This document shows, piece by piece, positions 15,320-38,611 of a DNA stretch of 38,611 bases. Origin of the DNA: Macrostomum lignano (taxonomy: Eukaryota); assembly GCA_002269645.1 (NCBI GenBank), contig NIVC01001687.1:1-38611 (forward strand), read 5' to 3'. The notes beneath the pieces were generated by a model. That model was not told the DNA's origin. It worked only from the letters and a program-made list of their open reading frames with translations, and made no database searches. Both the position numbers and the translations under genes were made by a program. The stretch's first letter is position 1. Each line of letters begins with the position of its first letter.

Positions 15320-15388
15320 CTCTCTGTTCTGGAAGAGCAAAGAACCAGGCCTGCAGTACTCGTACATTTACTGATGAATGAGGCATAT

Positions 15389-16005: not shown

Positions 16006-16666
16006 AATTCAAACGTTACAAAAAATCACAATTTTTAATGAAGCCCCCCTCCTCAACCCCCTCCTCAACCGAAAACAAAATATGCTCATATTTGAGCCTC
16101 CTAAACCTAGAATTCGAGACAGAAGAGAAATAAATTTCTGGTTTGGATTGAATCAACTGCGAATCATGGTTTTTCTCAGTTTCTTAGACTACAAGCCAGC
16201 TGTTTCGCATGACAATAAGGCAAACCCAGGCCAACCCTTGATTTGTGCAGGTGGGCAATCAGGTGTAACAGGAGAAAGTGGAATGGGAACGGGAGATATA
16301 TCCCTGCCTCACTAGGAGGTGATGCCTGTCGAATAGGTGCAGAATAAAGTTAAGGGGTGAATTCTCCGCAAGGGAAAGCCAGCTTCTTTGCGTTAACGAT
16401 GAAGCTCTCCGGATATGATTTCGTACACCTGCAGTTCTGTGCCTCACCTAATCCCTAAGTCTCTCGATCCAGCCTCTCCATTCGTATCTTCCCTCCGATA
16501 TCTTCCAGAAAAATTTGGCTTGGCATCGCTACATCCCCGGACTTCCTTATTGAATTTTTTCTTTGCGTCCTGAACACTTTGTTACAGAATAGGAACAACG
16601 TGTACTTTTTAGAAATTAAACCTTGTTCGAGGTTCCATTGAGAAACGCTCAAAAAATTGTTTGAAA

Positions 16667-18363
16667 GGGGAAATCAGGGACTGCATCCAGCTGTTCCAAC
16701 TGGGAAATGAGGGACTGCATCCAGCTGTTCAATTGGGAAATGAGGGACTGCATCCAGCTGTTCCAATTGGGAAATGAGGGACTGCATCCAGCTGTTCCAA
16801 TTGGGAAATGAGGGACTGCATCTAGCTGTTCCAATTGGGAAATGAGGGACTGCATCCAGCTGTTCCAACTGGGAAATGAGGGACTGCATCCAGCTGTTCA
16901 ATTGGGAAATGAGGGACTGCATCCAGCTGTTCCAATTGGGAAATGAGGGACTGCATCTAGCTGTTCCAATTGGGAAATGAGGGACTGCATCCAGCTGTTC
17001 CAATTGGGAAATGAGGGACTGCATCTAGCTGTTCCAATTGGGAAATGAGGGACTGCATCTAGCTGTTCCAATTGGGAAATGAGGGACTGCATCCAGCTGT
17101 TCAATTGGGAAATGAGGGACTGCATCCAGCTGTTCAATTGGGGAAATGAGGGACTGCATCCAGCTGTTCCAATTGGGAAATGAGGGACTGCATCCAGCTG
17201 TTCCAATTGGGAAATGAGGGACTGCATCCAGCTGTTCCAATTGGGAAATGAGGGACTGCATCCAGCTGTTCCAACTGGGAAATGAGGGACTGCATCCAGC
17301 TGTTCCAATTGGGAAATGAGGGACTGCATCCAGCTGTTCCAATTGGGAAATGAGGGACTGCATCCAGCTGTTCCAATTGGGAAATGAGGGACTGCATCCA
17401 GCTGTTCCAATTGGGAAATGAGGGACTGCATCCAGCTGTTCAATTGGGAAATGAGGGACTGCATCCAGCTGTTCCAATTGGGAAATGAGGGACTGCATCC
17501 AGCTGTTCCAATTGGGAAATGAGGGACTGCATCCAGCTGTTCAATTGGGAAATGAGGGACTGCATCCAGCTGTTCCAATTGGGAAATGAGGGACTGCATC
17601 AGCTGTTCCAATTGGGAAATGAGGGACTGCATCCAGCTGTTCCAATTGGGAAATGAGGGACTGCATCCAGCTGTTCCAATTGGGAAATGAGGGACTGCAT
17701 CCAGCTGTTCCAATTGGGAAATGAGGGACTGCATCCAGCTGTTCCAATTGGGAAATGAGGGACTGCATCCAGCTGTTCCAATTGGGAAATGAGGGACTGC
17801 ATCCAGCTGTTCCAATTGGGAAATGAGGGACTGCATCCAGCTGTTCCAACTGGGAAATGAGGGACTGCATCCAGCTGTTCCAATTGGGAAATGAGGGACT
17901 GCATCCAGCTGTTCCAATTGGGAAATGAGGGACTGCATCCAGCTGTTCCAATGGGGAAATGAGGGACTGCATCCAGCTGTTCCAATTGGGAAATGAGGAA
18001 CTGCATCCAGCTGTTCCAATTGGGAAATGAGGGACTGCATCTAGCTGTTCCAATTGGGAAATGAGGGACTGCATCCAGCTGTTCCAATTGGGAAATGAGG
18101 GACTGCATCCAGCTGTTCCAATTGGGAAATGAGGGACTGCATCCAGCTGTTCCAATTGGGAAATGAGGGACTGCATCCAGCTGTTCCAACTGGGAAATGA
18201 GGGACTGCATCCAGCTGTTCCAATTGGGAAATGAGGGACTGCATCCAGCTGTTCCAATTGGGAAATGAGGGACTGCATCCAGCTGTTCCAATTGGGAAAT
18301 GAGGGACTGCATCTAGCTGTTCCAATTGGGAAATGAGGGACTGCACCTAGCTGTTTCTGGGAA
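16667..18363. repeat. 34-bp minisatellite, about 50 copies
   Basis: Unit tccaattgggaaatgagggactgcatccagctgt with 1-bp indel and SNP variants. It explains all the MQSLISQLEQLDAVPHFP... ORFs. Confidence 0.97.
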
Positions 18364-18884
18364 ATTTAAGATTCTTCCTTTGAAGAGCTCACTCTAAATT
18401 TTAGTTTGAATATTTTATGGATAAAATACTATTATTTTTTGAATCTCAGCTCAGTTGAGTAGCCAGCCCCGGCCCTAGCTCAGAATTTCATTTAATTTCA
18501 TTGCCTGCCAACTGGTCTCTGCTCTGCCAAGGAGTGGGGCGGCTCCTCCAACTGCAGATCTTCTTTTAGCCAGTTGAGGTCCGCAGCGCCACTCTGCCAA
18601 ATTGAACGCCGCCGAGTCGGTGGCCACCTGCTGCAGTGCTGGGCCACTCGACTTCAGCTGCTGGCCGAATCACCAACCCACCCCCCCCCCAAGGCCAAGT
18701 GAGTCCCTACATGGAGACCCACCACAACCAAAACTTGGAGTAAGCAACTCCCAATTTTCTGACAATTCTTTTCTGACTTTTCTTAGGCTTTTTTTACACA
18801 CTAGTGATAGACAGGTGTGGTAATGACAGAATGGAGTTTTGAATATACACACAAAATGAAACTAGTTATATCAGAGTTCGACAA

Positions 18885-19765
18885 ACTCCAGCCTCTTTAT
18901 CCGGCCCTCGGGTCCTTTGAAACTTCACAATAGCAAAACGGCCCGCTCAGGGCTTGTGTCTCTTCTCAACTCTCTTCTCTAATCTCTCCTCTCCTCTCCT
19001 CTCCTCTCCTCTCTCTCCTCTCTCTCCTCTCCTCTCCTCTCCTCTCCTCTCCTCTCCTCTCTCTCTCCTCTCCTCTCCTCTCCTCCTCTCCTCTCCTCTC
19101 TCTCTCTCCTCTCCTCTCCTCTCTCTCCTCTCCTCTCCTCTCCTCTCCTCTCCTCTCCTCTCCTCTCCTCTCTCTCCTCTCTCTCCTCTCTCTCCTCTCC
19201 TCTCCTCTCCTCTCCTCTCCTCTCCTCTCCTCTCCTCTCCTCTCCTCTCCTCTCCTCTCCTCTCCTCTCTCTCTCCTCTCCTCTCCTCTCCTCTCCTCTC
19301 CTCCTCTCCTCTCCTCTCCTCTCTCTCCTCTCCTCTCCTCTCCTCTCTCTCTCCTCTCCTCTCCTCTCCTCTCTCTCCTCTCCTCTCCTCTCCTCTCCTC
19401 TCTCCTCTCCTCTCCTCTCCTCTCCTCTCCTCTCCTCTCCTCTCCTCTCCTCTCCTCTCCTCTCTCTCCTCTCCTCTCCTCCTCTCTCTCCTCTCCTCTC
19501 CTCTCCTCTCCTCTCCTCCTCTCCTCTCCTCTCCTCTCCTCCTCTCCTCTCCTCTCCTCTCTCCTCTCCTCTCCTCTCTCCTCTCCTCTCCTCTCCTCTC
19601 CTCTCCTCTCCTCTCCTCTCCTCTCCTCTCCTCTCCTCTCCTCTCCTCTTCTCTTCTCTCCTCTCCTCTCCTCTCTTCTATTCTCTTCTCTCCTCTTCTC
19701 TTCTCTACTCTCCTCTCTTCTCCTCTCCTCTCCTCTCCTCTTCTCTCCTCTCCTCTCCTCTCCTC
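18885..19765 (+). repeat. Roughly 800-bp (CTCTC)n polypyrimidine tract grown out of the CT-rich interior of a hAT-like MITE copy
   Basis: tatccggccctcgggtcctttgaaacttcacaatagcaaaacggcccgctca (about 18898-18949) matches the MITE interior at 36320-36362 and 4010-4068, and is followed directly by pure C/T sequence to about 19765. Confidence 0.9.
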
Positions 19766-20323
19766 AGCCTACAGTTCAGCCTACAGCCTACAGTCAGCCT
19801 ACAGTTGTCTCAATATAGGGAGTTGCTACTCCAGATTTTGGTTGTGAGTCTCCTTGGTAGTTCACTGCCCCCGCGAGTAAGTCACGGCACACTCTGCCTG
19901 CACCCCCTCTTGGCTGCCAGAGCTCGGGGCAGGAAGGCGGCTTAGAAACCAGCAGCAGCTGCCGCAACAGCTCAACACTGTGCGACACTCACTGAGAGCT
20001 CCTCGAGAGCCGCTCGGTCAACTAAACTGACACTCACTTGAGGACTTGAAGACGTTAGTTGGAGTTTTACTATGTGTCTCAGGGGCCATAGGGGGCATTC
20101 TTGCCTATCTGCTCAGCCAAACGATCTAATTTGTCAATCTGAAGAGCTAGAGGATTAGGCCTCTGAACTCACGCGATATACTTTTCCCCTCCCCTATCTT
20201 ACGCCGCACCCTGCTGCCAAACCAGAGTTTCCTCCTGAAGCGTTTGATCGGTAATTATTTGCCATTGTTTGAGCAAACGGTTCCAGGAGAGCAAAGCAGA
20301 TCAGAGAAACCGATGGCACGATT

Positions 20324-20979
20324 AGTCCAATCTCAATGAAATCCAATCTCACTGAAGTCCAATCTCACTAGAGTCTAATCTCTCTGGAGTCCGATCTCAC
20401 TGGAGTCCAATCTTACTGGAGTCCAATCTCACTGGAGTCTAATCTCACTGGAGTCCAATCTCACTGGAGTCCAATCTCACTAGAGTCCAATCTCACTGAA
20501 ATCCAATCTCACTGGAGTCCAATCTCACTAGAGTCTAATCTCTCTGGAGTCTAATCTCTCTGGAGTCTAATCTCACTGGAGTCTAATCTCACTGGAGTCT
20601 AATCTCTCTGGAGTCCGATCTCACTGGAGTCCAATCTCACTGGAGTCCAATCTCACTGGAGTCTAATCTCACTGGAATCTAATCTTACTAAAATTCAATC
20701 TCACTAAAATCCAATCTCACTAAAAGTCCAATCTCACTAAAATCCAATCTCACTGGAGTCCAATCCCACTAAAATCCAATCTCACTAAAATCCAATCTAA
20801 CTAAAATCCAATCTCACTAAAATCCAATCTCACTGGAGTCCAATCCCACTAAAATCCAATCTCACTAAAATTCAATCTCACTGGAGTCCAATCCCACTAA
20901 AATCCAATCTCACTAAAATCCAATGTCACTGGAGTCCAATCTCACTAAAGTCCAATCTCACTAAAATCCAATCTCACTG
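20324..20979. repeat. 16-bp minisatellite, about 40 copies
   Basis: Unit tggagtccaatctcac (tggag at 20401, 20417, 20433, 20449); the taaaatccaatctcac variant dominates the 3' third. Confidence 0.95.
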
Positions 20980-21627
20980 TAAGCTTCACGCAGCAGCCAA
21001 CCTGTTTCTACAGCAGCAACACAGCTTGGCCCAGCAACCAGTCATCTGGAGACATCCTTGAGCATCTTTCCAGTCCCGAAAAGCATCTTCATCAGCTCTG
21101 AGAGGATGCCAACTTCTTGACTTTCAAACATTCTCCCAATTGGATAACGAACTGAACACCCAAGCTGATGGGAGACGCAAACGAGATTATCCCCAACAAC
21201 CAAGCGGCTTGATAAACAGGCGCATTCATTTTGTGACGTCCAGGGCCTATAAATACCCCAACAACAGTTTGCAGCCTCCGAACTACTAATATTGGGACTT
21301 AATCAGACGAAATAGTTACGCATCATCTGCGTAATGCATTCGAAAGTTCGAATATCAATGGCTATGATGAAGTTCCCAGATTTCCTGGGAGTCAGATCTT
21401 TAACAAGCGAGGACGCGGATCTGTCTGTTCGGCAACCAGTTTGCGCAGCTGCAGTTCAGAATTTCAGATCGGATTTTTGACGGACCACCTGCGGAGAGAA
21501 GCCGCTGAATCGGCACAGCGGGGGGCGGGGGAGGCTGGCAGGGCGCGGGACCGCAGACACCAAAAATTCATTCGGCACCCGAGTCCATGGCTGACTTGGG
21601 ACTGCTTTGAAATCCTCCGAAACTGCA

Positions 21628-23725
21628 ATTCGGAAACACAAGCGCCCGTGTGTTTATTGTTTGATTCCAAGCACAAGCATCCGTGTGTTTATTGTTTGAT
21701 TCCAAACACAAGCACCCGTGTGTTTATTGTTTGATTCCAAACACAAGCACCCGTGTGTTTATTGTTTGATTCCAAGCACAAGCACCCGTGTGTTTATTGT
21801 TTGATTCCAAGCACAAGCACCCGTGTGTTTATTGTTTGATTCCAAGCACAAGCACCCGTGTGTTTATTGTTTGATTCCAAACACAAGCACCCATGTGTTT
21901 ATTATTTGATTCCGAGCACTAGCACCCGTGTGTTTATTTTTTGATTCCAAGCACAAGCACCCGTGTGTTTATTGTTTGATTCCAAACACAAGCACCCGTG
22001 TGTTTATTGGTTGATTCCAAGAACAAGCACCCGTGTGTTTATTGTTTGATTCCAAACACAAGCACCCGTGTGTTTATTGTTTGATTCCAAACACAAGCAC
22101 CCGTGTGTTTATTGTTTGATTCCAAACACAAGCACCCGTGTGTTTATTGTTTGATTCCAAACACAAGCACCCGTGTGTTTATTGTTTGATTCCAAACACA
22201 AGCACCCGTGTGTTTATTGTTTGATTCCAAGCACAAGCACCCGTGTGTTTATTGTTTGATTCCAAGCACAAGCACCCGTGTGTTTATTGTTTGATTCCAA
22301 ACACAAGCACCCGTGTGTTTATTTTGATTCCAAGCACAAACACCCGTGTGTTTATTGTTTGATTCCAAGCACAAGCACCCGTGTGTTTATTGTTTGATTC
22401 CAAACACAAGCACCCGTGTGTTTATTGTTTGATTCCAACACAAGCACCCGTGTGTTTATTGTTTGATTCCAAGCACAAGCACCCGTGTGTTTATTGTTTG
22501 ATTCCAAACACAAGCACCCGTGTGTTTATGTTTGATTCCAAACACAAGCACCCGTGTGTTTATTGTTTGATTCCAAACACAAGCACCCGTGTGTTTATTG
22601 TTTGATTCAAACACAAGCACCCGTGTGTTTATGTTTGATTCCAAAGCACAAGCACCCGTGTGTTTATTGTTTGATTCCAAGCACAAGCACCCGTGTGTTT
22701 ATTGTTTGATTCCAAAGCACAAGCACCCGTGTGTTTATTGTTGATTCCAAGCACTACACCCGTGTGTTTATGTTTGATTCCAAGCACAAGCACCCGTGTG
22801 TTTATTGTTTGATTCCAAACACAAGCAGGTGTGTTTATGTTTGATTCCTGAGCACAAGCGAGGTGTGTTTATGTCTGATTCCGAGCACTAGCACCCGTGT
22901 GTTTATGCCCGATTCCGAGCACTAGCACCCGTGTGTTTATGCCCGATTCTGAGCACTAGCACCCGTGTGTTTATGCCCGATTCCGAGCACTAGCACCCGT
23001 GTGTTTATGCCCGATTCCGAGCACTAGCACCCGTGTGTTTATGCCCGATTCCGAGCACTAGCACCCGTGTGTTTATGCCCGATTCCGAGCACTAGCACCC
23101 GTGTGTTTATGCCTGATTCCGAGCACTAGCACCCGTGTGTTTATTGTTTGATTCCAAACACAAGCGAGGTGTGTTTATGCCCGATTCTGAGCACAAGCGA
23201 GGTGTGTTTATGCCCGATTCTGGGCACTAGCACCCGTGTGTTTATGCCCGATTCCGGCACTAGCACCCGTGTGTTTATGCCCGATTCCGAGCACTAGCAC
23301 CCGTGTGTTTATGCCCGATTCCGAGCACTAGCACCCGTGTGTTTATGCCCGATTCCGAGCACTAGCACCCGTGTGTTTATGCCTGATTCCGAGCACAAGC
23401 GAGGTGTGTTTATTGTTTGATTCCAAACACAAGCGAGGTGTGTTTATGCCTGATTCCGAGCACTAGCACCCGTGTGTTTATGCCTGATTCCGAGCACAAG
23501 TGAGGTGTGTTTATTGTTTGATTCCAAACACAAGCGAGGTGTGTTTATGCCCGATTCTGAGCACAAGCGAGGTGTGTTTATGCCCGATTCTGGGCACTAG
23601 CACCCGTGTGTTTATGCCCGATTCCGGGCACAAGCACCCGTGTGTTTATGCCCGATTCCGAGCACAAGCACCCGTGTGTTTATGCCCGATTCCGAGCACA
23701 AGCACCCGTGTGTTTATGCCTGATT
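21628..23725. repeat. 35/34-bp minisatellite, about 60 copies, two subtypes
   Basis: 5' subtype caagcacccgtgtgtttattgtttgattccaaaca (35 bp); 3' subtype ctagcacccgtgtgtttatgcccgattccgagca (34 bp); transition near 22830-22880. Confidence 0.96.
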
Positions 23726-24380
23726 GTGCCTAGCGATAATGAATTTCCGAATGCATGACACAGTGCAGACTCATGGTTCCAAAATCGCAAAATTCTATCT
23801 GAAAAGCTTCAATCGAATTCCATCACTCACCCGCGCGGCGCTTTGGAAGCTCCGAGAGGAAAAATCCTCAATTTGCTGCTGCGATGCTTGACGGGCTCAG
23901 ATTGCAGAATTAGGGAGAGTATACAGTTGCGCAGTCGCCTGATGAAGCTGATTCCTACGAACCAAAAGCGATATAATTGGAGATGCTGGATCTTTCGCGA
24001 TCTCTCTCTCACGCTCTCTAGCGCTCAAGAGTCGAGCCGCGGCCTAATCTGAAACGAATAATTTTTCTCTATTAGAATGGGAGCTTTGCCGGACCCTACC
24101 AAGAGCTGTCCCTATAGCTCCAGTGGGCTGAAGCCGCTGGTCTGACATTGGTTGGGAGAGTCAGAGCCAATCGGCTGTCGCATGGCTTGTACTGCTGTGT
24201 TGTAGGTAGATACAAGTCAACAGCGGTCACAGATAATAGAAATACTACTAAACATGCAAAAACTACGATCATCTACTCGTTCTAGTAGCAAGTTAGAGTT
24301 TTTTTTAGCTTTTTGCTAGAAAGATAGAAAGATTATTAAATTTTACAAGAAATTTACAGTTTTTGAAGCCACTGAAGGAG

Positions 24381-24665
24381 GGGGTTTTAGCCTAGTGGTT
24401 AGAGCGTCGGACTAACAAAACTAAAAGGTCGGGGGTTCGATTCCCGATGCAACTCCGAACAATCTGTGTCCTTAAGCAAGACACTTAACTCTGCATTGCT
24501 TCAGTTCACCCAGCTGTAAAATGGGTGCCAGCATTAGCTGGGGTAATTGAGGCTGTGTGTGGTGACCCCCCAGTCCTTGGACTGAACAGCCGAACGCAGC
24601 CTTCAGATGCGCTGCGCAATAGCTACGGCTGAGCTGTCGGTTGCACATCTGGCCCCATCTGCCCA
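24381..24665 (+). mobile_element. Uninterrupted tRNA-derived CORE-type SINE
   Basis: A box tagcctagtggttagagcg; B box ggttcgattccc; CORE-like tgtgtccttaagcaagacacttaac...cagctgtaaaatggg. Co-linear with both halves of the split copy at 4930-5118 and 7430-7543. Confidence 0.88.
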
Positions 24666-25189
24666 TATGTCGGAAAAAATGAGAATCACTGCAGACTTGC
24701 TCAGGATCGTGAAGCACACAATAATTTGCAGGGCTTTCTAAATTAACAAATTTAGAAATTCAGCCTCTAAAAAAGCACAAAGTGGTCACAGATCAGCCCG
24801 CATTCGTGCGCCCCGCTATTCAGAATATCAGAGCAGCCCAGGCCAGTAGGGCGGGCGATGCTGCACTCAGCTTGACTGGATCAGCAATCCTCAAATCCAT
24901 GCCAAGCTGCTCGTCAGTCCTGCAAGGCAGCAAAATCGAATGGCTGATCGTTAATTAGACTCGCGCGACAGGAGAAGCCAGTTATTGAGCTTTCCTTTGT
25001 CTTTTACTTCCTTAAAACTGGGAAATGAGTTTTGAAAAACAGAGAGAGGCCCTAATTAAACTAAACTCTTGTTTTCTGCCGTGAGAAAAACAAGCTGAGC
25101 ATAAGGGCTGCTCCGGCCCTTGAATAAAGAAAGTACAAAGAAAAATGTGGAGTAAAAATACGGCTTAAAATGCTTGCTCAGCTTAAAAT

Positions 25190-25475
<286 letters not shown>

Positions 25476-25492
25476 TATTGTATCATTCCCAG

Positions 25493-25890
25493 CAGTGGCG
25501 TAAATAGGGGGTTTTAGCGGCTTGCGAAAACGAAGTAAGTTGCAAGCGAGAAAAGTGAAAGTTTATTTGCTTTACGCGGTAAGTATAAATAAGCACGCGA
25601 TCACATGGGGAGGTGCGCCAAAAAGGTGGCACGATTGAAGGCCAACCCCCCCGACTTAGCATACTGACTGTCTGTCCGAGTACACCCACCCCCCAGCCTG
25701 GCGGGCAGGGGGTTTCAGTGCAGATGTACTCGCAATCGCTGGCTGCGTGCTGATTGGGCCGCCACAGGGTATACGGGGACCTAGCTCGTATTTTGGGTAA
25801 ATCTATTTTGGCAATTGATTTTTAACAAAAAATCAGTTTTTTACACTTTTTCTCGACATTTTAAGCTTTCGAATCCTGCGTACGCCACTG
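25493..25890. mobile_element. MITE with CAGTGGCGTA terminal inverted repeats (398 bp)
   Basis: cagtggcgta (25493-25502) and tacgccactg (25881-25890); no ORF; no clear TSD; superfamily not assigned. Confidence 0.65.
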
Positions 25891-27282: not shown

Positions 27283-27506
27283 GGGACCTACATTCATTCC
27301 GAGACACACTTTTTTATTCTAATTGATCAGTCATACTCGTGAATAATTGGCATTATGTAAGTGCATCAGCTCTCCTTCCTCTTTCTCGGACAGTCGGTAC
27401 TCTTTCCAATTTAAGCCGAGAGATTTATTTCTCTTTGAAACAATCAAGTAAGCGACCACGTCGAACGTAGTTGACTTAGTTGTCGAATTTGTTCCCAGAG
27501 GTTTTC

Positions 27507-27671
27507 GATGAAGTTCGGTGGGATTTTTTGATGAAGTTTCTGGTGGTTATTAATGAAGTTTCTGGTGGTTATTGATGAAGTTCCTGGTGGTTATTAATGA
27601 AGTTTCTGGTGGTTATTGATGAAGTTCCTGGTGGTTATTGATGAAGTTCCTGGTGGTTATTGTTGAAGTTT
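27507..27671. repeat. 22-bp minisatellite, about 6-7 copies
   Basis: Unit gatgaagtt(t/c)ctggtggttatt. Confidence 0.9.
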
Positions 27672-27757
27672 CTTCTTCCATTGTTGAGCATTGACCAAAT
27701 GGTCAATCCGTTTTAATCTTCTAGAAAAGGAAAAACAGAGAGATGGAGGGGGAGGGG

Positions 27758-27981
27758 TCTCCACCCTCTCCGTCTCTGCCCTCTCCGTCTCTGCCCTCTC
27801 CGTCTCTGCCCTCTCCGTCTCCACCCTCTCCGTCTCTGCCCTCTCCGTCTCTGCCCTCTCCGTCTCTGCCCTCTCCGTCTCTGCCCTCTCCGTCTCTGCC
27901 CTCTCCGTCTCTGCCCTCTCCGTCTCTGCCCTCTCCGTCTCTGCCCTCTCCGTCTCTGCCCTCTCCGTCTCTGCCCTCTCG
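27758..27981. repeat. 15-bp minisatellite, about 15 copies
   Basis: Unit ctctccgtctctgcc. Confidence 0.95.
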
Positions 27982-29018
27982 CTGCCCTCTCGCTCTACAC
28001 TCTGTTCCTCTCTGCCCTGCTACTTCCATTTCCGTAGTCAAGTCTCAATCCACTTTCTCACCCTTCAGTCGCGGCCAATCTATTTTCCACTTCCCTCTTT
28101 CTTTGGCCAGCACCTGTCCCAGCCTTCGCCAGCTCGTTAAAATCGCATTGAGTCAGTCTTGTTCTTGATTATCCTTTCGTGCTGTCGCCCACGCCGCCTG
28201 TCAATCAGCGGGGGTGCAGGATTTCGCTGTAAACACCACGACAAGCCTATTGAACCGGAAGAAAATAATAATACCAGATTCGAATTTCGCCTTTGCCTAC
28301 TCGTGCTGTCGGTATCGGGTGGCAGGGATTGGGGGTCCTGGCAGAGTAAAACAAATCCTACTTTGCTGGGATATCATTTTAACTAGAGACATTTTTAGCC
28401 GGATCAAAGTTCGAAAACATCATTCGTTCAAAAAAATATTCTACGTGTTTTTTGATCGAATACTTCAAAGTGCCTGACTACAACGGATCTGGCGTCCGGG
28501 ATGATTTGCTAGCTTTGATCAGCAGTAACGTGACTTCAATGCCAACTTCCAAAACCAAGTCGCAGCTGTGGATTTTCAGATCTGAAAGCTGAAACAGAAG
28601 TTCCCGCTGACGGCCTAGCTTTGGTTGTCCTTTAATAGCGACTGATAATGGAAGCTAAGGACACACATAAACTAAAATAAGCTCTATTGACTCTTCACAT
28701 ACCGTTATCTCCACTTCAAATAGCAAACGGATTTTTCGCAGGGGAGAAAAACAGGACTCTGAAGGTGAACAGCGCCCACTCGACTGAGATACTCGCTGCA
28801 GAATGTGACGCGATCTCGAGGCAGAGAAATTCCCCAGCCAATCAGAGAATTGGAAAGAAATCCCAAACCTGAGAGGAAGAGAGAAAAGGAGCAGAAATTT
28901 CTGGCAGTTTTTTTCAAAGCACCACTCGGCTCTCTAGGGACTGCCTTTCGAGCAGACCCGATCTACTTCTTCTTTCTTAGAACTCGCTTCAACCAGAACT
29001 GCTTTCGAACTCTCAACC

Positions 29019-31043
29019 ATGCAGTCACCTGTCAACGGAAGCGACTCCACGTCGAATTCGACAAGTCTTCCCGGGTACAGCAGGCTGTACATCGCAGTGC
29101 GGGCCGTCACCATTCCCGCAGCAGCCACCGGCCTGATGCTCAGCTGCCTGTCGCTGACGCTGCTGGTCCGCAAGTACCTGCGCAGCCGGGAGGTGTTCGA
29201 CGTCGGCCTCATCCTGATGCAGCTGGCCCACGTCAACTACTGCCTGGCCACCTGCGGCTACATGCCGTTCGACCTGGCGCTGCTCATGTCGGAGCACACT
29301 TTAGAGGCGTCACTGGCGAATACATTGTTCGATGTGAGCTGGCTCGATGGCTTTATCAACTACTCGTAATTGCATAATCTCATTGTGCTTTTTTATTTCA
29401 GCACCTAGAGAAGCAGCATCGCATAGTATAGGATGCCAAAAAGAGCTGAAAAGTTTAAGCAGATTTTGGAGCTCCCTCCAAGCAGATCAGAACAACATTT
29501 ACGCTTGCAGATCTTAAGAAGACTTTGGCGCCTACAATGTGTTAATTTCAGCCATAGAAGTATCTCAGCTAATTTCCAAAGAGAAGCATCTTTGTTTTAC
29601 TGTCTCATCTAGTTGAAGTAAATTGAGATTAGGAATCGTTGCCTCAATACGGATTTTCCTTGGATGCCTAGCAAATCAGCGATTGACCTGAGAGGGTTCA
29701 TGGTTACCTCCCTCATGTCCCTGCGGTTGAGTCCAAGCAGGGTCAACGCGGGACTTCGCTTTCGTACAGGTGTGCAGCTATCATCCGATTAACAACTGCG
29801 TGACAACTTGAAGCTTTACGCAAGAAACTGTCTAATTAAACTTGGAAAGAGGATTAGGCAAATGTGATTGATATAGTTCAGAGTTTCTTCTGGATCTGAC
29901 GGGCAGAAGATTTTCCCAAAGGAACATGAGCGGCAGCCATAGTCATGAATAGGTCACGAGTCACGGCAGCCGGGTCACTTATGTATTAATAATCTCGGAG
30001 TTCCCTGCGTTAGGCCGTCAAAAAAGGCTGCGAACTTGACTATTGGCTATGACTGTCACGGCGTTGTTGCGAGAAAACCCTATGTTGTATGCAAAATTTC
30101 TAAGAAAGTAATTAACACTTTCAACCCTTTTATGTTGAAGACAAATACTCAGCAAGTCTTTGATTGTTTTAGAGCTTCTGCCGCACCTCAAACTGTTCTC
30201 TCTCAGGTGAGCTACTGCTGGGTGTCGTTCAGCGTGGCCGTGAAGAACATGTGGACGGCCTGCATCAGCGTGTTCCGCTGTCTGGCCACCTTCAAGCCCA
30301 TCGGCTTCCGCCGCTGGCTGACGCGCCGCTTCCAGCTGTGCGGCTTCGGCGTCCTGCTGCTGGTCGCGGCCGCCGCCGGGCCCGGCACCTTCGCCGCGTG
30401 GCGTCTGGCAGCCGGCGGCAGCGAGCGGTTCCTGGTGGACGTGATGCTGCCGCTGACGAGGACGCCTCAGACTTACCTGCCCGTGCCGCTGATCCTGCTG
30501 GCCTCCGGCGTCACCGCCGCTCAGTTGGCTGTTGCCAGGAGCAACCAGCCTGGTGAGACAGCCGACACCGCCGCAAACGCCAATGGAACTGCGAACTCGG
30601 AGGCTCGCAGTTGGAGCACGGCCACCCGCATCGTGCTGGTGCTGGCGATCTCATTCTCCATCTTTGAGCTGCCTGGCGCCATCTTCATCACATTTGAGAT
30701 TTACCAGCTGCTTCCAGACTGGATGGTGCCGGTGACCGACCTGCTGGTGACCATCGACAGCGCCTGCAGCTTTTTCGTGTTCTACGCGTTCAGCGCCAAC
30801 TTCCGTCGCTTGGTTAGGCAGCTGGTGAAGGAGCCCACAGCTGCCGGTGCGGACCGCCCGGTTCCCGCCGATACCCGAGCCGCCGCTCAGCGTCGAAACC
30901 GACTTCGCACCACTAGCAGCCGAACAGGCAGCAGCAGCAGCGTCGACGGAGGCGGCAGCAGTCGTCAGAAGCTGCTCGGTCCGCGCGTCCCGACAATGTC
31001 GGTGCAGTCACAGCAGCCCATTGCGCTGCGCGATTTGCAGTAG
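29019..31043 (+). CDS. Rhodopsin-class (class A) orphan GPCR, peptide-receptor/Srw-like; exons 29019-29333 and 30207-31043, 383 aa
   Basis: Seven hydrophobic segments. TM3 ends SVFRCLATFKP (DRY equivalent); TM6 RIVLVLAISFSIFELP; TM7 TDLLVTIDSACSFFVFYAFSANFR. N-terminal NxS/T sequons; phase-0 GT-AG intron. Confidence 0.87.
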
Positions 31044-32030
31044 TGTGCTTGGAATTATTTATGAAGCTTAATTTAATCCTTTGAGTAGTCCAGGGAATAC
31101 AGCTAAAATTCGATTACTATTTCACTGTTATCCCTTTGTGCTGATGGACTGTCATTATCCAAAGAATTTGACAAATAAATAAAGAAAAATATACTTTTGT
31201 TTCCCCGCGTTGCATTCTGAAACATCCCGTGTGCTTATCTTGTGATTTTCTGTGTTTCATTCTGAAAAAATCTGACTTGCCTGAAGGAAAACCTCGCTCA
31301 CAGGTCGTAGTAAGTTTACGATCGAGAAGCCTCATGTTCCCAATTCATTTTTGAGAATTTATGCAGCCTTGCTTATTGCGGCTTCCATGAAATCAGATTT
31401 TATGTACATGTGGATTGTAGGTTGATTTTCAAGTCTTTTCAGTCGATTCAGCAGTGATGAATGGAGTGGCAGCTCGGAGACGGCGGGTGGCACTGATTGG
31501 CTTGTGACCAAGTGTTCCGATAGTTGACTGGGCTCGTGCAGTTTTATTGCACTCTTACTATTCAGTAGCTGGTAAGCCAAAAAAAAACAACGAAGCGTGC
31601 CACCAGCCGGCTCCAAGCCGGTTAATAAATAGTATGCAAAGAAAATGGGATGCGGGTCAAACCGGCCCGAGCGAACACACAAAAAAGAACCCCGCGAGCA
31701 CCCCACCCCAGCCCAGCCAATCAAAATACACGCTGGGTAAGGCTCCACGAGGGGGGTAGAAAAAGAGGGGGGCTGCCGGCCCAGCCAGCCAATCCGCGCA
31801 CGCGCAGGCTGCCCAAAACCAGAACCGGTCTAAACCAGCTCAAACCAGCTCGCCAGATCAGAACCAACTAAGGCGGCAGACTGGGCGGTTGGCATGCACC
31901 AAAAAAGTGCGAGGAGGTCATTGTGGCGCAGGCCACAACATAGCTAGCAAGTTTAGTGCCAATATATATAAGGCCTTAACAACCAAATTAAGTCATTAAA
32001 AAATTAACCAGATGTTGAACAATGTATGAC

Positions 32031-33150
32031 TATCAAGAGGTCACGATTCACACACAACTTACCGCGTAAGGCAGTTGCCTTACCGCGTCTCGGCCTACGA
32101 TGAGCCAGTAAGTGGCATAGAAAAAAATGCGAGCGAAGCGAGAATTTTTTTCTATGGTGCTTACTTTTGCGAAATCGTCGGCCTCGACGCTATGGCAGTT
32201 GTGTGTGAATCGTGAACTTTCGATAATGGAATTGTGTCTAGTTTCGTCCAAAAACCAATTCAAAACGGCTAGGACACAACTTCCCAGACGGGAATTGTTC
32301 ACTGAGCGATTCTAGGGATTTGTGTCATAGGCATTTTCCACTTGGCGCAAGCCAAATGATGGCCATAGACTAAACGTCTGGAACGAAAAGTTAAGCGGAA
32401 CAGTCTGAAATTACCATAGACGAAACATGTTAAATGAAGTTGTGGTCTTATAAGCTGGAACTCTGCAGCAGAGGATACATGTTCCTGTTTCTTCTGTTTG
32501 CCCTAACCTCTATTCATGCCACTCATACGAATGATAAATTGGTCGAATTTGCCGATTGAAAGCATTGACGGCTTGAATGGAAATGAGGTCAACTTTCTCA
32601 GCGACTTGAGTATGGGTGGACGTGACGAGGCGGATGACGAAGAGTTGATGGAGTTCATCCGATTCATTGAATGCGGTAACGATGATGCTCTGCCACCACT
32701 GCCAAGCGAATAAGAGGCTTGCCCCGAGGATCCTATGCGGAACAAACCATGCAATTCGGCCGATGTGAGTGTAATTATTGTCGATTCTAGCTCTACTCAT
32801 CGATTATTGCGGAACAATTGGTCCACTTTCATTATGCCCACGTTACGGCCGTTTTCGTACATGTATACAATCTGTTTATTCAGCTTTGTTGTATTGAATA
32901 AAAAATATCCTCGCAAACGCATTGATACAGGAATATACAGATTGCTTATCTGCAAATGGGTATATCCAAATATAACCCGTTGGGAATATCCAAAGATGGG
33001 GGGCGGCTTGACCATAGACTATTCGCAGATAAGCAATCTGTTGTATTCCTGTTTCGATGCCTGAAAGGCGCGCAAAAATTTACTTAGTTCACAATTTCCG
33101 TCGACGCAATCATTTGTGGCTCAAACGAAACTAGACACAATTGCTATAGA
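32031..33150 (+). mobile_element. Non-autonomous Crypton-like derivative (about 1.1 kb); exact ends uncertain
   Basis: Left hairpin with 18-bp perfect outer arms (32041-32058 vs 32198-32215) and 13-bp inner arms, centred on gcgagcgaagcgag. An 18-bp perfect inverted repeat (32230-32247 vs 33125-33142), ggccatagac at 32361, and a short ORF homologous to the recombinase N-terminus. Confidence 0.78.
32516..32713 (+). pseudogene. Truncated 65-aa ORF homologous to the N-terminus of the Crypton-like recombinase
   Basis: MINWSNLPIESIDGLNGNEVNFLSDLS...DDEELMEFIRFI...LPPLPSE aligns by eye with MALINWKHLPCESLDGVSDSELSFITALS...DDTDLQNFIGFL...LPELPES (5474 onward). Confidence 0.75.
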
Positions 33151-33265
33151 TAATTAATTCGTGTACACGCCTTTCTGTGACGAGACATACCTCTGGTCTA
33201 GAGATGTATCGCAGTATGTATTACAGAAACTATAAAAAACAGTATTTAAAAGCACATCTCAGAAC

Positions 33266-33655
33266 AGTTCCAGAGACACATCACAGCAGAGTTCCGGAGA
33301 CACATCACAGTAGAGTTCCGGAGACACATCACAGCAGAGTTCCGGAGACACATCACAGTAGAGTTCCGGAGACACAGCACAGTAGAGTTCCGGAGACACA
33401 TCACAGTAGAGTTCCGGAGACACAGCACAGTAGAGTTCCGGAGACACAGCACAGTAGAGTTCCGGAGACACATCACAGTAGAGTTCCGGAGACACATCAC
33501 AGTAGAGTTCCGGAGACACAGCACAGTAGAGTTCCGGAGACACAGCACAGTAGAGTTCCGGAGACACAGCACAGTAGAGTTCCGGAGACACAGCACAGTA
33601 GAGTTCCGGAGACACAGCACAGTAGAGTTCCGGAGACACATCACAGCAGAGTTCC
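33266..33655. repeat. 24-bp minisatellite, about 16 copies
   Basis: Unit agagttccggagacaca(g/t)cacagt. Explains the SRVPET(H/Q)H ORF. Confidence 0.95.
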
Positions 33656-35921
33656 AAGGACACGCTGCACATTTCTAGAGACACGTCGCAAAACCGTTTG
33701 AGGGACATATCGCAGCACAACTCCAGAGACTTAAATAGAAAGCTTTTGATACTGGTAAGGTATCTATTGAGATTGTCTATAAAAACATCATTAGTATCAG
33801 TTTAATTACGTACTTTCTATCGCTAGCAGCTACAGCTGACAAAGTGCGCAAGGCTTGTTTAGATTAATAAATATTCGTCCTTAGACTAAAAGCTAAAGCA
33901 AGTTGCTTCACGAAAAATTCCAATAAATATCAAGTCGCTTTATAAGCGTTATATTAGCTGTCTTGTGCCTTTCAGGTAAGCTACATCAAAGACAAAGCGC
34001 AATATTCAAGACTTCGGAAATTCGGTTAACGAATTGCGACGCTGATCTGCTGCATCATTATTCCCAACTAAGAAGATGCGAGTAAATGTAATCTGACGAA
34101 TCACCCCGGAACTGTGAAAGGCTTGTTGCGAGTTTGAGGTTGCAGTACCCGCTATCATTTTCTACCTCCTCATGATGCAGCTTAGTGCCCAGCTGCCAAT
34201 TATACTCGTACTAAACAATTACAATATCGTATGCTAATAATAATTATTAAATTATAACCCTTGTTGATGAAATGTATAGCGGCCCTGACTTTCTAATCGT
34301 CATCTAAACTCCTAAAGAATTTGGCGAGAAAAGGGGAAAAATATGAAGCCAAAGCACAGCTTCCTGCTTGAGCGATTTTTTAGGGAGAGAAAAACTTAAA
34401 GTGCAAACTTAGCAATCAAAGACCTAGGCAGCAAGAGCGTCGTACAGAGGCAAATGCGTCACTAAAAGTTATTTATTAAAGCGCAAAACCCAAACCGCGC
34501 TCACGGACGCATAACATCAAGGGGTGAATCGAAGGGGGGCATTTTTGAGCATTTTTTTACAAGTAATACGGAAGATGACTCAGATTTTCACAATCAGTTC
34601 GTACTCCGAGCACATGTCAGCGAGCGGTTGGATGATTTGCTAAGGGAACTTCGCGGTTTACCAGCCTTGAACGGCAAGAACGGCTACCAGGCTTGACTAC
34701 CAGTCCGAAACTTTGAGATAACGCACCTGCAGCTAGGTCTTGAAAATAGAATACCGATAGAAAACCGGTCACTGTACTATTAGTAGTATTTCCAAAGCAC
34801 TGAATAATCAAGTAGAAGGACACTGCTGCTGCACTTCCAAATCGGGTCGGGAGAATTTGACGTTTTTCTCACCTAATCAGGATTCTTGTATTGAGGTCCT
34901 GACATTCTGCAATTGGATTTTGCAGATTCCGCAGGATCTGCATCAAATACTGTGTGTGTCATCAAAGTTTCTCATTATCTCAAAAAAGGAAACAGACTGA
35001 CTCAGAATTTACATTTCGTAATTCAAAATTAACATGAATACGTTTATTACTCTGAAAGGCAAGGAGGGATGCCGCAGGGCACCTCTGAAAGATTAGATTA
35101 TTTTAATCTGACTGACATTCAACTGAGTCAGAAGCACACTGGACTGCACTGTCCTCTCTCCGCCGCCATCGGAGTACACATTGTACTGTATTTTCAAGAG
35201 TTTAATTCTTCGTAAGGTACTCATTTGGCACAGCAAGGGTGCAGGAGTTCTGATACAGCGTTCTGATGCGAAAATCTTCAAAGTCGTGCAATTCAAACAC
35301 GTGTACTACACATGTACACATGTAAATTTTGCATCACCATGTATTTAGCTGTACAATGTACATGCTTACGATCGTATTTCACCTTTAGCATTTGAATGAA
35401 AACATGATGGAAGTACATGATGGACTTCTTTAAATCACTTGCATTAGTGATTGGGGAGGTGGTTTTTGATGCCATAGACGTTTTTGAATCTCTGGGCTTT
35501 TGGGCCGTTTCGGTATGGCCTGCGGTGCAGGCCTTTGGCCTTCAAATGGTTAATCGGTCACAAGGATCTTTGTCACAAGTAGATTTGTTAAAAGGATCTT
35601 GTCGCAGGATTCATGCCTAGAGGGGCCAACCCGGCCAATACCTATGGTGCAGGGTAACGGGGTCAGCTCAATAAACATGACTGCCTGTCTCGTCGCCGGT
35701 TGCAGGTCGACTGTCACCTGTGATTTGCAGTGGCAATCTAAAAGACAAAACCTACTGCGGTACAGCGTTAAAAGCCATTAGCTCGTACAGCAATCCGAAG
35801 TCGGAGCAAAGCAAATGAGACGCCAAAATCGTTCGGCTGAACAGAGTTCTTCCATCAAAAGAGATTATCGTGCCGCTTGTACAGTAGAAAGTATAAAAAT
35901 AATGTTTACTAATGTAGCCTC

Positions 35922-36559: not shown

Positions 36560-37150
36560 TAAATAATGGCCATAGAAACTCGTGCGTTTATATGTATACA
36601 AGTGCATTAACTGCCGCTAATTTGCATTAAAGTAAGTTTTGACAAAGACAATCGGGCGTTAAATGTCATTAACTGCCCGCTAATTTCGATATTTCTTTAC
36701 TGCAAGCGGGCATAAATGTAGTCTATGGCATTAAAAGGCAAGAATAAAAAGTGCCCAGCGGGCACAAAGGTCATGGTACAATCGGGTATACCATCGCGTT
36801 CTAGTTGATTTAGCTCTTCAATCACGTCGTCTGGAATGTCGAGAATCTCTTCTGACTCGATCTTGTCCGCGAATTCCTTGTTCAATTCCTCCAAATACCG
36901 GCTGTTTGACTCCGCTCAAATCCAGGCCAGCTCTTCGGTCGACATACCAGAAACAACTTTTCTAGGTAAATTTGAATAATTGATTAAGTGATTCATCATG
37001 TTCAGAGCGCGGAAGCAGAATGCTAACAGATTAAAATGTATCCTGCCGTTCTTATTCCTTTTACAGTGAATCTAAGCCCATAAATACTTATGCCTATTTG
37101 TCTATGGTCCTAAATTGACAAATGAGGAGAAAGAATGGCCATAGACACTT
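36560..37150 (-). mobile_element. Degenerate Crypton-like derivative (third copy); boundaries approximate
   Basis: Minus-strand remnant ORF from 36999; GGCCATAGA-type motifs at 36568, 37100-37110 (inverted) and 37137. No terminal hairpin was found. Confidence 0.6.
36697..36999 (-). pseudogene. Remnant of the recombinase N-terminus with an in-frame TGA at 36916-36918
   Basis: MMNHLINYSNLPRKVVSGMSTEELAWI*AESNSRYLEELNKEF...IPDDVIEELNQLERDGIPDCT; similar to LINWKHLP...GVSDSELSFI and DMDQVELDSLPRST of the 5474 ORF. Confidence 0.65.
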
Positions 37151-38113
37151 AAAACTTCCTGCATGTGATAACACAGATCCCGGAATTTTCGTCATTGACG
37201 CCCGGGAATTTCCTACATTATGACAATATTACAACAATATCACAATATCACAATATCACATGCATTGAGAAATGGTATAATTGGTATAATGGAGAAATGA
37301 GAAATTGGTCGGTCGTAAGCGCCCGACCAAAAGTCTACACTGTTGCCCGGAAAAAATGTAAATGTTATAATGACACAATTCCAACCCTTCAGGAAATTTA
37401 AATGTTGCTAATGACGCCACCGATTCCTGGAAAATATATGCTGGCCTGAGGCAATTCCTTTCCTTATCTCACATTGAATAAAAAGTGAATGAAAAGTCAT
37501 GGAGCGCTTTTAACGAGTGAAAATATTTAGTCTGTTTAAGTCATAACTTGGCGGGCAGACAAAAAATGCGCGGTAAACCAACGAAAAAACATCTCAAATA
37601 TTTATTTCGCCTTTCACATGCATACAGCTTTCAAATTCAATGCGATACACTCATAAACTCACGATTACATGTCGTCTGTTACAGCGGGCACTATTACTCT
37701 CAGCTGTTTTAAGGAATGCTTATCATAACTTATTTCAAGCCTAATATCAATTTTCGATGTATCCAAGATCCATAGTGCTGAATTGAAGTCGACTATTTGA
37801 GCACCTGACTCTATTCCAAGTTAGTGATTCCCAAATTCAGATCGTACCTGGCATCAAGCGAGCAATAGAAGTGAATGTTATTAAATTCATTTTTGTGAGT
37901 TTCTTTATTTAGTAGCAACTTCTTCTCAGTAATATTTACTGAGCCCTAGGAGACGCAATAAACTCTGGCCAATCGTGCTTCATCGGACACTTTTTTCAGC
38001 AATTAAGGACAAAAAACGTCAGACGAGTGTCCTGAAACCCCCAACACGGTGCAAGCTACGAGTATAATCCGAGAGCTAGAATCCGAGTCTGCATCGCAAT
38101 GCGTTTTACTAAA

Positions 38114-38430
38114 ATGCCAGACGCCAACATCAGCAGCCATGGCCCCGAGGCCAGCAACGCCACGGGTCCCGGATACAGCAGGCTGTACATTGCTGTGCGG
38201 GCCGTCACCATTCCCGCGGCCGCCGCTGGCCTGCTGCTCAGCTGCCTGTCGCTGACGCTGCTGGTCCGCAAGTACCTGCGCAACCGGTGGTGTTCGACGT
38301 CGGCCTCATCCTGATGCAGCTGGCCCACGTCAACTACTGCCTGGCCACTTGCGGCTACATGCCGTTCGACCTGGCGCTGCTCATGTCGGAGCACACTTTA
38401 GAGGCGTCACTGGCGAACACGTTGTTCGAT
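38114..38430 (+). CDS. Exon 1 of a second, paralogous orphan GPCR (rest of the gene outside the window); one 1-bp frameshift near 38289
   Basis: MPDANISSHGPEASNATGPGYSRLYIAVRAVTIP... then VFDVGLILMQLAHVNYCLATCGYMPFDLALLMSEHTLEASLANTLFD|gtgagc; near-identical to 29073-29333. Confidence 0.85.
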
Positions 38431-38611
38431 GTGAGCTGCTCGATGGCTTATCAATTAATTGCATAATCTGCGGGTCCTTTTCTGATTTGAGCATGTAGAG
38501 AATTCTGATTTGAGATGGGGCAGCTGAAACGAATGTACGTGCGCGGCCACATTAATGTAGGGTTGTTTAATTCGTCTCGTGCAATCCACGCTCATGAAGA
38601 CCAATTCTCAA

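Follow-up and report, generated by a model that had tools for sequence, protein, structure and literature searches.

A putative non-autonomous Crypton-lineage element of Macrostomum lignano with a palindrome and an inverted repeat at its left end

The element considered here, E2, occupies positions 32025–33142 of a 38,611-nt stretch of Macrostomum lignano DNA (contig NIVC01001687.1 of assembly GCA_002269645.1), which was analyzed over its whole length and is called the window. At its left end E2 carries a long imperfect palindrome followed by one arm of an inverted repeat (IR-L), the other arm (IR-R) lies at its right end, and between the two arms is the beginning of a tyrosine recombinase. 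E2 is internally deleted, and we consider it likely that it is a non-autonomous member of the Crypton lineage and that its palindrome, in a circular form of the element, is part of the attachment site. The evidence comes from E1, a Crypton copy at 5.1 kb in the window whose target is also present unoccupied; from a second copy of the E2 family at another locus; and from the recurrence of the same layout in E3, an intact M. lignano element in contig L001, and in more distant relatives. The label E4 denotes a remnant near 37 kb, L001 to L011 are contigs retrieved via homologous proteins, and those proteins are given P numbers.

Anatomy of E2 and lineage of its recombinase

Feature coordinates are collected in Table 1. 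Read from the left, the order is CAATG, 6 nt, the hairpin, 4 nt and the inverted repeat. An earlier reading of the sequence (the original prediction) had described a palindrome of roughly 175 bp with 18-bp outer and 13-bp inner arms around GCGAAGC, an 18-bp sequence 15 bp further on that is inverted at 33125–33142, the decamer ggccatagac, and a short open reading frame (ORF) related to the recombinase N-terminus, all of which are found where it had placed them. The perfect 18-nt outer arms (32042–32059 and 32197–32214) extend, with three mismatches, to 29 nt (32031–32059 and 32197–32225; 90% complementary), and the 15 nt that separate IR-L from the perfect arm correspond to 4 nt beyond the extended arm. 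The inner arms measure 22 nt (32107–32128 and 32144–32165) and include the 13-nt pair catagaaaaaaat and atttttttctatg (32116–32128 and 32144–32156), the centre reads gcgagcgaagcgag (32129–32142), and ggccatagac lies at 32361–32370. A second palindrome stands near the 3' end, with two 17-nt direct repeats and one CCATAGAC motif (33012–33019) in its loop.

Table 1. Coordinates of the elements and their parts in the window (strand "." where none applies; a slash marks the insertion point)
Feature	Position	Strand	Basis or remark
Left half of SINE-like repeat split by E1	4961–5118	+	ends ...GAAGCAATG; aligned to intact paralogue
E1, decayed full-length-type Crypton copy, 2.3 kb	5119–7434	+	hairpin 5125–5222; IR-L 5227–5251; IR-R 7410–7434
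E1 recombinase pseudogene	5474–6945	+	at least 4 frameshifts
Right half of SINE-like repeat split by E1	7435–7541	+	begins CAGATTTAAG...
Intact SINE-like paralogue, empty site for E1	24383–24654	-	...GAAGCAATG/CAGAGTTAAG...
CAATG, left junction of E2	32020–32024	+	presumed crossover/overlap; target origin by analogy with E1
E2, internally deleted non-autonomous Crypton-type element	32025–33142	+	right end may reach ~33165
Left-end imperfect palindrome of E2, 195 nt	32031–32225	.	repeat finding, DNA fold
GCGAAGC mini-hairpin, exact centre of E2 palindrome	32133–32139	+	sequence
IR-L of E2, AATTGTGTCTAGTTTCGT, 18 nt	32230–32247	+	100% complementary to 33125–33142
Two direct CCATAGAC motifs between IR-L and ORF of E2	32363–32370, 32414–32421	+	candidate protein-binding (arm-type) sites
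Recombinase N-terminus remnant of E2, 60 codons and stop	32531–32713	+	BLASTP/tblastn
Second, 3' palindrome of E2, 17-nt and 21-nt arms	32919–33060	.	repeat finding; fold of 32900–33150, z = -6.2
IR-R of E2, tip ...CACAATT	33125–33142	+	high-identity match to second copy stops here
Zone past IR-R of E2, uncertain boundary	33143–33165	+	13 nt GCTATAGATAATT, then AATTCGTGTA
E4, third Crypton recombinase N-terminal remnant, other subfamily	36700–36990	-	tblastn E = 1e-11 to 4e-13 to P0009, P0011, P0015

Folded as single-stranded DNA, 32020–32250 reaches -58 kcal/mol, compared with -27.2 ± 3.7 kcal/mol for dinucleotide shuffles (z = -8.4; 0 of 200 as good). In a sliding fold scan of 200-nt segments over all 38.6 kb the E2 hairpin ranks first of 1537, a stretch of 60% G+C ranks second, and the hairpin of E1 ranks third. 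The palindromes of E2 and E1 are not products of chance.

The ORF of E2 matches the N-terminus of the E1 recombinase (38% identity, E = 5e-12) and that of P0002 (43% identity, E = 2e-12) in BLASTP, and weaker in-frame similarity continues past its stop to ~32866 (tblastn, where the matches to P0003 and P0004 end at 32863–32866); E2 therefore retains ~60–115 N-terminal codons of the recombinase and lacks the remainder. An exact-sequence look-up of two E2 ORFs returned no record.

The identity of the enzyme is read from E1 and its relatives. Over at least four frameshifts, the ORFs at 5405–6948 yield a conceptual protein containing HCIRVT...RRYL, which is 82% and 62% identical to the M. lignano "Tyr recombinase domain-containing" proteins P0001 and P0002, the latter intact at 449 aa; the same search also gave less similar proteins, found in assemblies of sequencing runs and metagenomes. 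These matches identify the window as flatworm DNA, of M. lignano or a close relative, and set aside the mosquito origin that the tRNA-derived SINE and the minisatellites had at first suggested. Among the relatives, DUF3504 (PF12012: P0015, P0016, P0011) and the QRICH1 domain (PF25561: P0009) score above their Pfam cut-offs, and Phage_integrase (PF00589: P0009, P0016) scores at or above its own. Proteins of the Macrostomum clade match DUF3504/QRICH1 only below threshold, yet they are homologous to those Pfam-positive proteins (E = 1e-50 to 1e-60). Residues R229, K263, H350, R353 and Y385 are invariant in all nine aligned sequences (P0002 and eight relatives). A profile search finds XerA and Tn1549 Int weakly by sequence, and the AlphaFold model of P0002 (mean predicted local distance difference test score, pLDDT, 67) superposes on Cre over ~336 columns (E = 7e-8; template modelling score 0.57 on Cre), with weaker structural matches to integron integrase, Tn1549 Int, XerA and XerH. 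Judged from alignment and predicted fold, the enzyme is Cre-like and belongs among the tyrosine recombinases of Cryptons (DUF3504/QRICH1 type), within the CryptonA and CryptonI groups taken together (Kojima & Jurka, 2011; PMC3212892). A DUF3504-type recombinase is what defines animal Cryptons (Kojima & Jurka, 2011; PMC3212892). Neither a reverse transcriptase nor another transposition enzyme is present in E3 (1.96 kb, one 449-aa ORF) or in E1 (2.3 kb, the recombinase pseudogene alone), and the elements in L007 and L008 (~1.85–2.0 kb) have one ORF each.

Insertion of E1 as one piece, and recurrence of the architecture

The original prediction had compared E2 with a "5.1-kb element". An element does exist at 5.1 kb, and its size is 2.3 kb; as had been claimed, E1 and E2 have the same layout (CAATG, 6 nt, hairpin, 4 nt, inverted repeat) and the same GCGAAGC centre, with different arms.

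E1 interrupts a tRNA-derived repeat of ~270 bp that resembles a short interspersed element (SINE) and is present in two copies in the window, one of them split by E1. ARAGORN called no tRNA in these repeats and Rfam found nothing in them. The intact paralogue, which represents the empty site, reads ...TGAAGCAATG/CAGAGTTAAG... (in short, ...GAAGCAATG/CAGAGTT). At the left junction of E1 the sequence is ...TGAAGCAATG/GTAGAT followed by the hairpin (...GAAGCAATG/GTAGAT), and at the right junction it is ...GGGCCATAGAACAATG/CAGATTTAAG... (...CCATAGAACAATG/CAGATTT). The comparison therefore defines the insert as 5119–7434 with the hairpin inside it: hairpin and inverted-repeat unit of E1 were inserted as one piece at CAATG. 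The empty site has a single copy of this pentamer, and the filled site has one at either junction; since CATTG opens IR-L, the CAATG on the right belongs to IR-R, as its tip. Such junctions are the signature expected of a site-specific crossover within 5 bp of identity. Short terminal direct repeats are found in E1 (CAATG), E2 (CAAT), E3 (TAAT) and L008 (AATG), and 4–6-bp terminal direct repeats have been proposed for fungal Cryptons (Kojima & Jurka, 2011; PMC3212892). No target-site duplication surrounds the IR-bounded unit in E1, E2 or E3; the bases that flank it differ on the two sides (CGCT/CAGA in E1, ATGG/GCTA in E2, GC/TT in E3).

E2 is not single-copy; had it been, this would have counted against the original prediction. 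A search with its N-terminal translation led to P0017, a chimeric M. lignano gene model with 95% identity, and through it to locus L010 (NIVC01000736.1), where a second E2-family copy lies at ~4511–5628. L010 4678–5628 is 94–98% identical to window positions 32230–33142 and has the identical internal deletion and the same 3' palindrome. The flanks at L010 are unrelated, nothing else is common to it and the entire window, and the two copies have in common a 23-nt left terminus outside the inverted repeat, CAAT(G/C)TATGA(C/T)TATCAAGAGGT, with left-side homology setting in at A-CAAT. The deletion derivative has therefore multiplied to at least two loci, and the left-end sequence that lies outside the inverted repeat has moved with it. 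In the gene model itself (BOX15_Mlig001804g2, L010 5001–6300), the first exon is a Crypton N-terminal remnant and is joined to an unrelated downstream exon.

An intact element with this layout is present in M. lignano. The P0002 locus, L001 (NIVC01002014.1), carries E3, an element of 1.96 kb at ~3611–5569, which reads ...GTTAATG, GTA, a 104-nt hairpin (3617–3720; z = -10.4), GC, IR-L (3723–3745), the ORF (4001–5350) and IR-R (5547–5569), followed by the right junction ...GATAAT/TTAG; its 23-nt inverted repeat encloses the 449-aa ORF. The family with autonomous and non-autonomous members that had been predicted is thus represented on both sides, E3 being of autonomous type. E2 itself, described as a "non-autonomous partner", does appear to be non-autonomous, with its 60–115 remaining codons; a partnership with E1 is not supported, since E2 belongs to another subfamily (38% N-terminal identity, unrelated arms and inverted repeats) and E1 is a pseudogene. 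The hairpin cores of E1 and E3 agree at 89% over 56 nt that include GTGGCGAAGCCAC; the 24-nt outer arms are only 33–38% alike, with a self-complementarity within each element of 96% (E1) and 88% (E3). The outer arms have thus been substituted wholesale, with pairing retained.

The architecture is also present in distant relatives. L007, with a recombinase ~30% identical to P0002, shows ...GAATGCAATG (CAATG), TTGT, a near-perfect palindrome of 99 nt (z = -11.6) centred on GCGGGCGC-GCAG-GCGCCCGC, 11 nt, and a 47-nt inverted repeat (342–388 and 2018–2064) around the ORF. L008, a metagenome contig whose recombinase has 32% identity and which came from a narrower-alignment locus search that gave two metagenome loci, shows ...ATAATG, a 110-nt palindrome (z = -11.5; centre GCGTAGC), an inverted repeat (127–165 and 2003–2040) ending ...ACAATG, and the right end ...GTAACAATG/GATG; a second palindrome of 106 nt at that end (z = -17.4) contains IR-R. 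A 3' palindrome is likewise found in L007 and is absent from E1 and E3, and that of E2 is conserved in the copy at L010. L005 has a weaker version of the layout (z = -4.7; 19-nt inverted repeat at 79%). L002 and L003, with less than 100 nt upstream of the ORF, were left out of the hairpin comparison.

The plan common to E1, E2, E3, L007 and L008 is a (C/T)AATG junction, 0–6 nt, a palindrome of 100–195 nt, 0–11 nt, and an inverted repeat of 18–47 nt that encloses the body and whose right arm has (C/T)AAT at its end, and the five elements represent at least four sequence-unrelated families of arms. Within Macrostomum, and in relatives from other samples at ~30–35% protein identity, the architecture is conserved despite the change of sequence. 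The original prediction had argued from such conservation to function: the conservation stood, in Macrostomum and relatives alike, and the function continues to be inferred from it.

A proposed attachment site and the alternatives to it

In the model proposed for Cryptons, the element leaves its site as a circle and integrates by recombining over a short identity (PMC3212892). E2 has lost its recombinase and kept its cis-acting ends and, if this model applies here, would be moved in trans by a related recombinase. In the excised circle the joined ends would place IR-R directly before the hairpin, so that IR-R, hairpin and IR-L would form one nested palindrome of ~150–240 bp; the predicted junction is ...CTAGACACAAT-GTATGACTATCAAGAGG in E2 and ...TATGATAAT-GGTAGATTAAGTC in E3. 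Strand exchange by the recombinase with a (C/T)AAT(G) in the target would take place where IR-R meets the hairpin, 50–105 bp off the centre of the palindrome, and because the crossover would be off-centre, IR-R would come to stand at the far end of the integrated copy, which is the "offset" of the inverted repeat noted in the original prediction. When the ends are joined, mini-palindromes arise at the junction (CAAT-GGTAG-ATTG in E1, TAAT-GGTAG-ATTA in E3, CAAT-GTTGT-ATTG in L007), which have, as sequences, the form of a putative tyrosine-recombinase core site. The mirror-image position across the hairpin of E1 is degenerate, which would make the crossover unique.

Repeated motifs cluster at the proposed junction in E1, E2 and E3. 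The window contains 11 occurrences of CCATAGAC where 0.73 would be expected, a count reached in none of 100 shuffles, and in E1, E2, E3 and E4 no 7-mer is repeated more often than CCATAGA. The copies are placed alike from element to element: two direct ones lie between IR-L and the ATG, one lies ~70–130 nt from the right end, and others fall in the hairpin arms (E2, E3) or in the inverted repeats (E1); L007 and L008 repeat TTTGCGGGC instead, likewise in their hairpins. The CCATAGA(C)- or CCATAGAC-type repeats that flank the junction are probably additional binding sites, of arm type, for the recombinase or an accessory protein. E4 is closest to the subfamily of P0009, P0011 and P0015, and in its region (36560–37270, minus strand) there are four CCATAGA motifs and a weak hairpin (37162–37267; fold z = -2.75) directly after CAATG, and no clear inverted repeat was found there.

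The palindrome centre is a GC clamp with a loop of 3–4 nt in all five elements, and in four of them it is exactly GCGNAGC (GCGAAGC in E1, E2 and E3, GCGTAGC in L008). GCGAAGC alone is not enriched in the window (3 matches, 4.7 expected), and it is the exact central position that matters, not abundance. GCGNAGC forms an extraordinarily stable DNA mini-hairpin of 7 nt with a melting temperature of 70–76 °C (PMC13037366; PMC3201870), and this stability, in a heptamer that sits precisely in the middle of four of the five strong palindromes, speaks for a structure whose importance lies in its folded or extruded state. By analogy, the Crypton lineage might recombine in that state: in the circle, perhaps single-stranded, IR-R would pair with IR-L and the GNA-capped palindrome would fold, giving a cruciform or forked hairpin with an unpaired overlap between its recombinase sites. 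This extension of the proposal is conceivable, though we place it on the doubtful side.

Mini-hairpins of the GCGNAGC type are also known from the priming origins of single-stranded DNA phages and from some promoters (PMC13037366), and the hairpin lies upstream of the ORF. Both facts would suit an element in which the palindrome is a component other than a recombination site, namely a replication or priming origin of the excised, possibly single-stranded circle, or a promoter, terminator or small-RNA hairpin regulating the recombinase. The additional 3' palindromes of E2, L007 and L008 would suit it as well, those of E2 and L007 ending 55–65 nt before the junction and only that of L008 reaching it. 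We nevertheless hold such a role to be decidedly unlikely as a replacement for the attachment site, given that the hairpin of each of the five elements sets in 0–6 nt from the crossover, whether mapped or inferred, that its stem runs on into the pairing of the junction pentamer with the IR-L tip (CAATG/CATTG), that it is nested inside an inverted repeat that would flank it in the circle, and that it is kept in a derivative with no gene to regulate. Nor does any Rfam family match at gathering thresholds in the entire window; a scan for bacterial promoters and terminators, not relevant to a eukaryote, gave nothing above background.

A number of observations weigh against the proposal that E2 and its relatives carry the attachment site in their palindromes. 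The hairpin at L010 is rearranged: positions 4559–4634 are the reverse complement of window positions 32179–32254, and within 4559–4702 a perfect 25-nt mirror of IR-L and the adjacent arm replaces the left arm, while 43 unrelated nt stand in for the centre and right arm. Such a pattern resembles the outcome of foldback-templated copying combined with a central deletion, and it shows that the palindromes are dynamic and that a full hairpin is not needed for a copy to persist. Collinear homology between E2 and the L010 copy begins exactly at IR-L and stops exactly at IR-R. The right boundary is uncertain, the 10-mer AATTCGTGTA being present past IR-R in both E2-family copies (L010 5629–5668). 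Among the relatives, the hairpin is weak or missing in L006, L009 and L011, and L004 has a long inverted repeat downstream of the ORF; none of the four is counted as support. For the E2 subfamily, no parent of full length sharing its termini was found in the protein collection, the genome DNA not having been searched. A resemblance seen by eye between the SINE target of E1 and the circle junction of E1 beyond CAATG itself (CGGGTG..GAA.CAATG..AGATT), which would have made the target a pseudo-attachment site, is not significant (770 of 2000 shuffles or worse) and was dropped. The role assigned to hairpin, circle and excision, finally, is drawn from geometry.

Some of these points have details of their own. 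In L004 the only long inverted repeat (1528–1792, 38-nt arms) lies 3' of the recombinase ORF and is followed by CTATTGTTCT, whose complement ends the contig; the layout may reflect a mirror-image crossover or a permuted assembly. None of the contigs has overlapping ends, as an assembled circle would. Past IR-R of E2, the 13 nt of GCTATAGATAATT resemble a diverged duplicate of the IR-R tip, and after the 10-mer a second weak block, ACTATAA..ACAGTATT, follows in both copies (2 of 300 shuffles), so that the right terminus may lie ~20 nt past IR-R; alternatively, the target preferred by the subfamily may be an extended one. A tandem dimer was considered as the source of the extra repeat at L010 and rejected: the extra sequence mirrors IR-L perfectly over 25 nt, and the true IR-R does so over 18 nt only. 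P0005 was rejected as parent of the E2 subfamily: by eye its N-terminus looked closer, but the identity is 45% over 31 aa, and the UniRef entries are fragments without a contig.

The sharp limits of the collinear homology, which coincide with the opening base of IR-L and the final base of IR-R, and the rearranged hairpin at L010 are what would be seen if two neighbours had been taken for one element, the IR-bounded unit being a transposon with terminal inverted repeats (TIRs) and the hairpin an independent foldback-like repeat, comparable to a MITE (a miniature transposable element with inverted repeats), or else a preferred landing site. The SINE empty site, however, lacks both the hairpin and the IR unit of E1, with no leftover, and the IR unit is without a target-site duplication in E1, E2 and E3. 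The 23-nt left terminus outside the inverted repeat is present in both E2-family copies at unrelated loci, hairpin and inverted repeat are juxtaposed, 0–11 nt apart, in five lineages, hairpins and bodies carry the same motifs (CCATAGA in Macrostomum, TTTGCGGGC in L007 and L008), and the sole enzyme encoded is a tyrosine recombinase, not a DDE transposase. A pair of unconnected neighbours is therefore very improbable.

Since the mirror copy at L010 shows that arms can be rebuilt, some of the palindromy may be maintained mechanically, by mirror copying, rather than by selection. Taken to its limit, this would make the palindromes functionless by-products of foldback-templated repair or replication slippage at the element end, an account for which the perfect 25-nt mirror and central deletion at L010 would be the signature of templated copying. 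That limit seems to us scarcely credible: position, size class (~100–195 nt) and a GC-clamped, tight-looped centre are kept at ~30% protein identity, the exact GCGNAGC centre recurs in E1, E2, E3 and L008, an identical special loop in independent lineages being more than a by-product should retain, and imperfection and asymmetry are regularly seen at the stem base on the crossover side. The proposal of an attachment site in the palindrome of the circular form is the one retained below.

The surroundings of these elements are rich in other repeats. A 24-bp minisatellite array begins 15 nt beyond the right inverted repeat of E2, and the window is unusually dense in minisatellite arrays with periods of 8–35 bp (15248–16029, 16595–18400, 18921–19750, 20227–21043, 21494–23760, 25118–25500, 27503–28026, 33157–33732). 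A unit of ~626 bp at 306–931 has imperfect inverted repeats (41-nt and 38-nt arms, 79–85% complementary) and is possibly an unrelated MITE-like element, and a direct repeat of ~270 bp (29069–29341 and 38167–38438, 9.1 kb apart) is 93–97% identical between its copies. To the right of E1, the minus-strand ORFs 8664–8834 and 10468–10809 are presumably exons of an ionotropic glutamate receptor (SYTANLAAF motif, C-terminal transmembrane segment); if so, E1 and its SINE adjoin that gene or sit inside it.

Significance and relation to known systems

Cryptons are said to have been described by Goodwin, Butler and Poulter in 2003; to our knowledge, and in the papers searched, no one has reconstituted their transposition or defined the sites at which they recombine. 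A compact intact element (~2 kb), an exactly mapped insertion junction, a nested palindrome and an amplified non-autonomous derivative together provide a concrete attachment-site hypothesis and substrates for assays. They also provide a signature, (C/T)AATG followed by a palindrome with a GCGNAGC centre and an inverted repeat, by which Crypton ends, notoriously hard to delimit, could be sought in other genomes. Were the folded hairpin found to be necessary, structure-specific tyrosine recombination, a bacterial speciality until now, would reach into animals, and the elements would hold a eukaryotic counterpart of integron attC and filamentous-phage attP(+) and the first defined Crypton attachment site.

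The likeness to attC of integrons and to attP(+) of filamentous Vibrio phages that use XerCD lies in an imperfect palindrome conserved in structure and not in sequence (PMC4792948, PMC3442271, PMC3089051), in two inverted arms resembling recombinase sites that would pair on folding, in a crossover at the base of the stem beside an unpaired bubble, and in the use of a tyrosine recombinase. Here, however, the host is eukaryotic, the enzyme is Cre-like and not of the IntI or Xer type, the palindromes are longer, and it is the geometry alone that is compatible with single-strand folding, so that the comparison is an analogy of mechanism and not a statement of membership.

In lambda-type attP and in the circles of Tn916/Tn1549-type elements, as would be the case here, the joined ends of a circle form the site and have a short overlap in common with the target, and the CCATAGAC repeats on both sides of the core resemble the arm-type sites of lambda attP as candidate binding sites. 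Those systems differ in having no long palindrome at the junction, and the similarity of the proteins is at the level of the fold only. DIRS1-like elements, with inverted terminal repeats and an internal complementary region, combine a tyrosine recombinase with inverted repeats whose geometry fits only a circular or joined form, but over their several kb they also encode RNase H and a reverse transcriptase, and nothing of the kind is present in the 2-kb elements described here. Foldback elements and MITEs derived from DDE transposons share short non-coding derivatives, inverted repeats and strong hairpin potential; here, by contrast, there is no target-site duplication and no DDE transposase parent, the hairpin is at one end only, and the remnant ORF is that of a tyrosine recombinase.

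The closest likeness in content is to Cryptons themselves: the ~2-kb elements encode only a tyrosine recombinase (R-H-R-Y) of the DUF3504/QRICH1 type, without reverse transcriptase, appear to have non-autonomous deletion derivatives, and show direct repeats of 4–5 bp at both junctions that look like a recombination overlap rather than a target duplication. Cryptons are described as lacking TIRs, and in animal Cryptons, 50 copies of a Rhodnius family among them, neither direct nor inverted terminal repeats were found (Kojima & Jurka, 2011; PMC3212892); a 2026 paper on CryptonA elements likewise states that TIRs do not go with Cryptons. In the literature searched on Cryptons, with Repbase and Dfam consensus sequences lying outside the search, no hairpin, palindrome or cruciform architecture of the ends is described, nor are Cryptons in Macrostomum. 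The elements reported here differ from the published animal Cryptons in having a palindrome of 100–195 nt and an inverted repeat of 18–47 nt at their ends. The absence of terminal repeats, a trait that E1, E2, E3, L007 and L008 do not show, is descriptive and not mechanistic, and the departure from it is treated as a structural variant rather than as grounds for exclusion. We accordingly class the combination of hairpin and inverted-repeat ends as a new structural variant of Cryptons, and E2 as a new, probably non-autonomous member.

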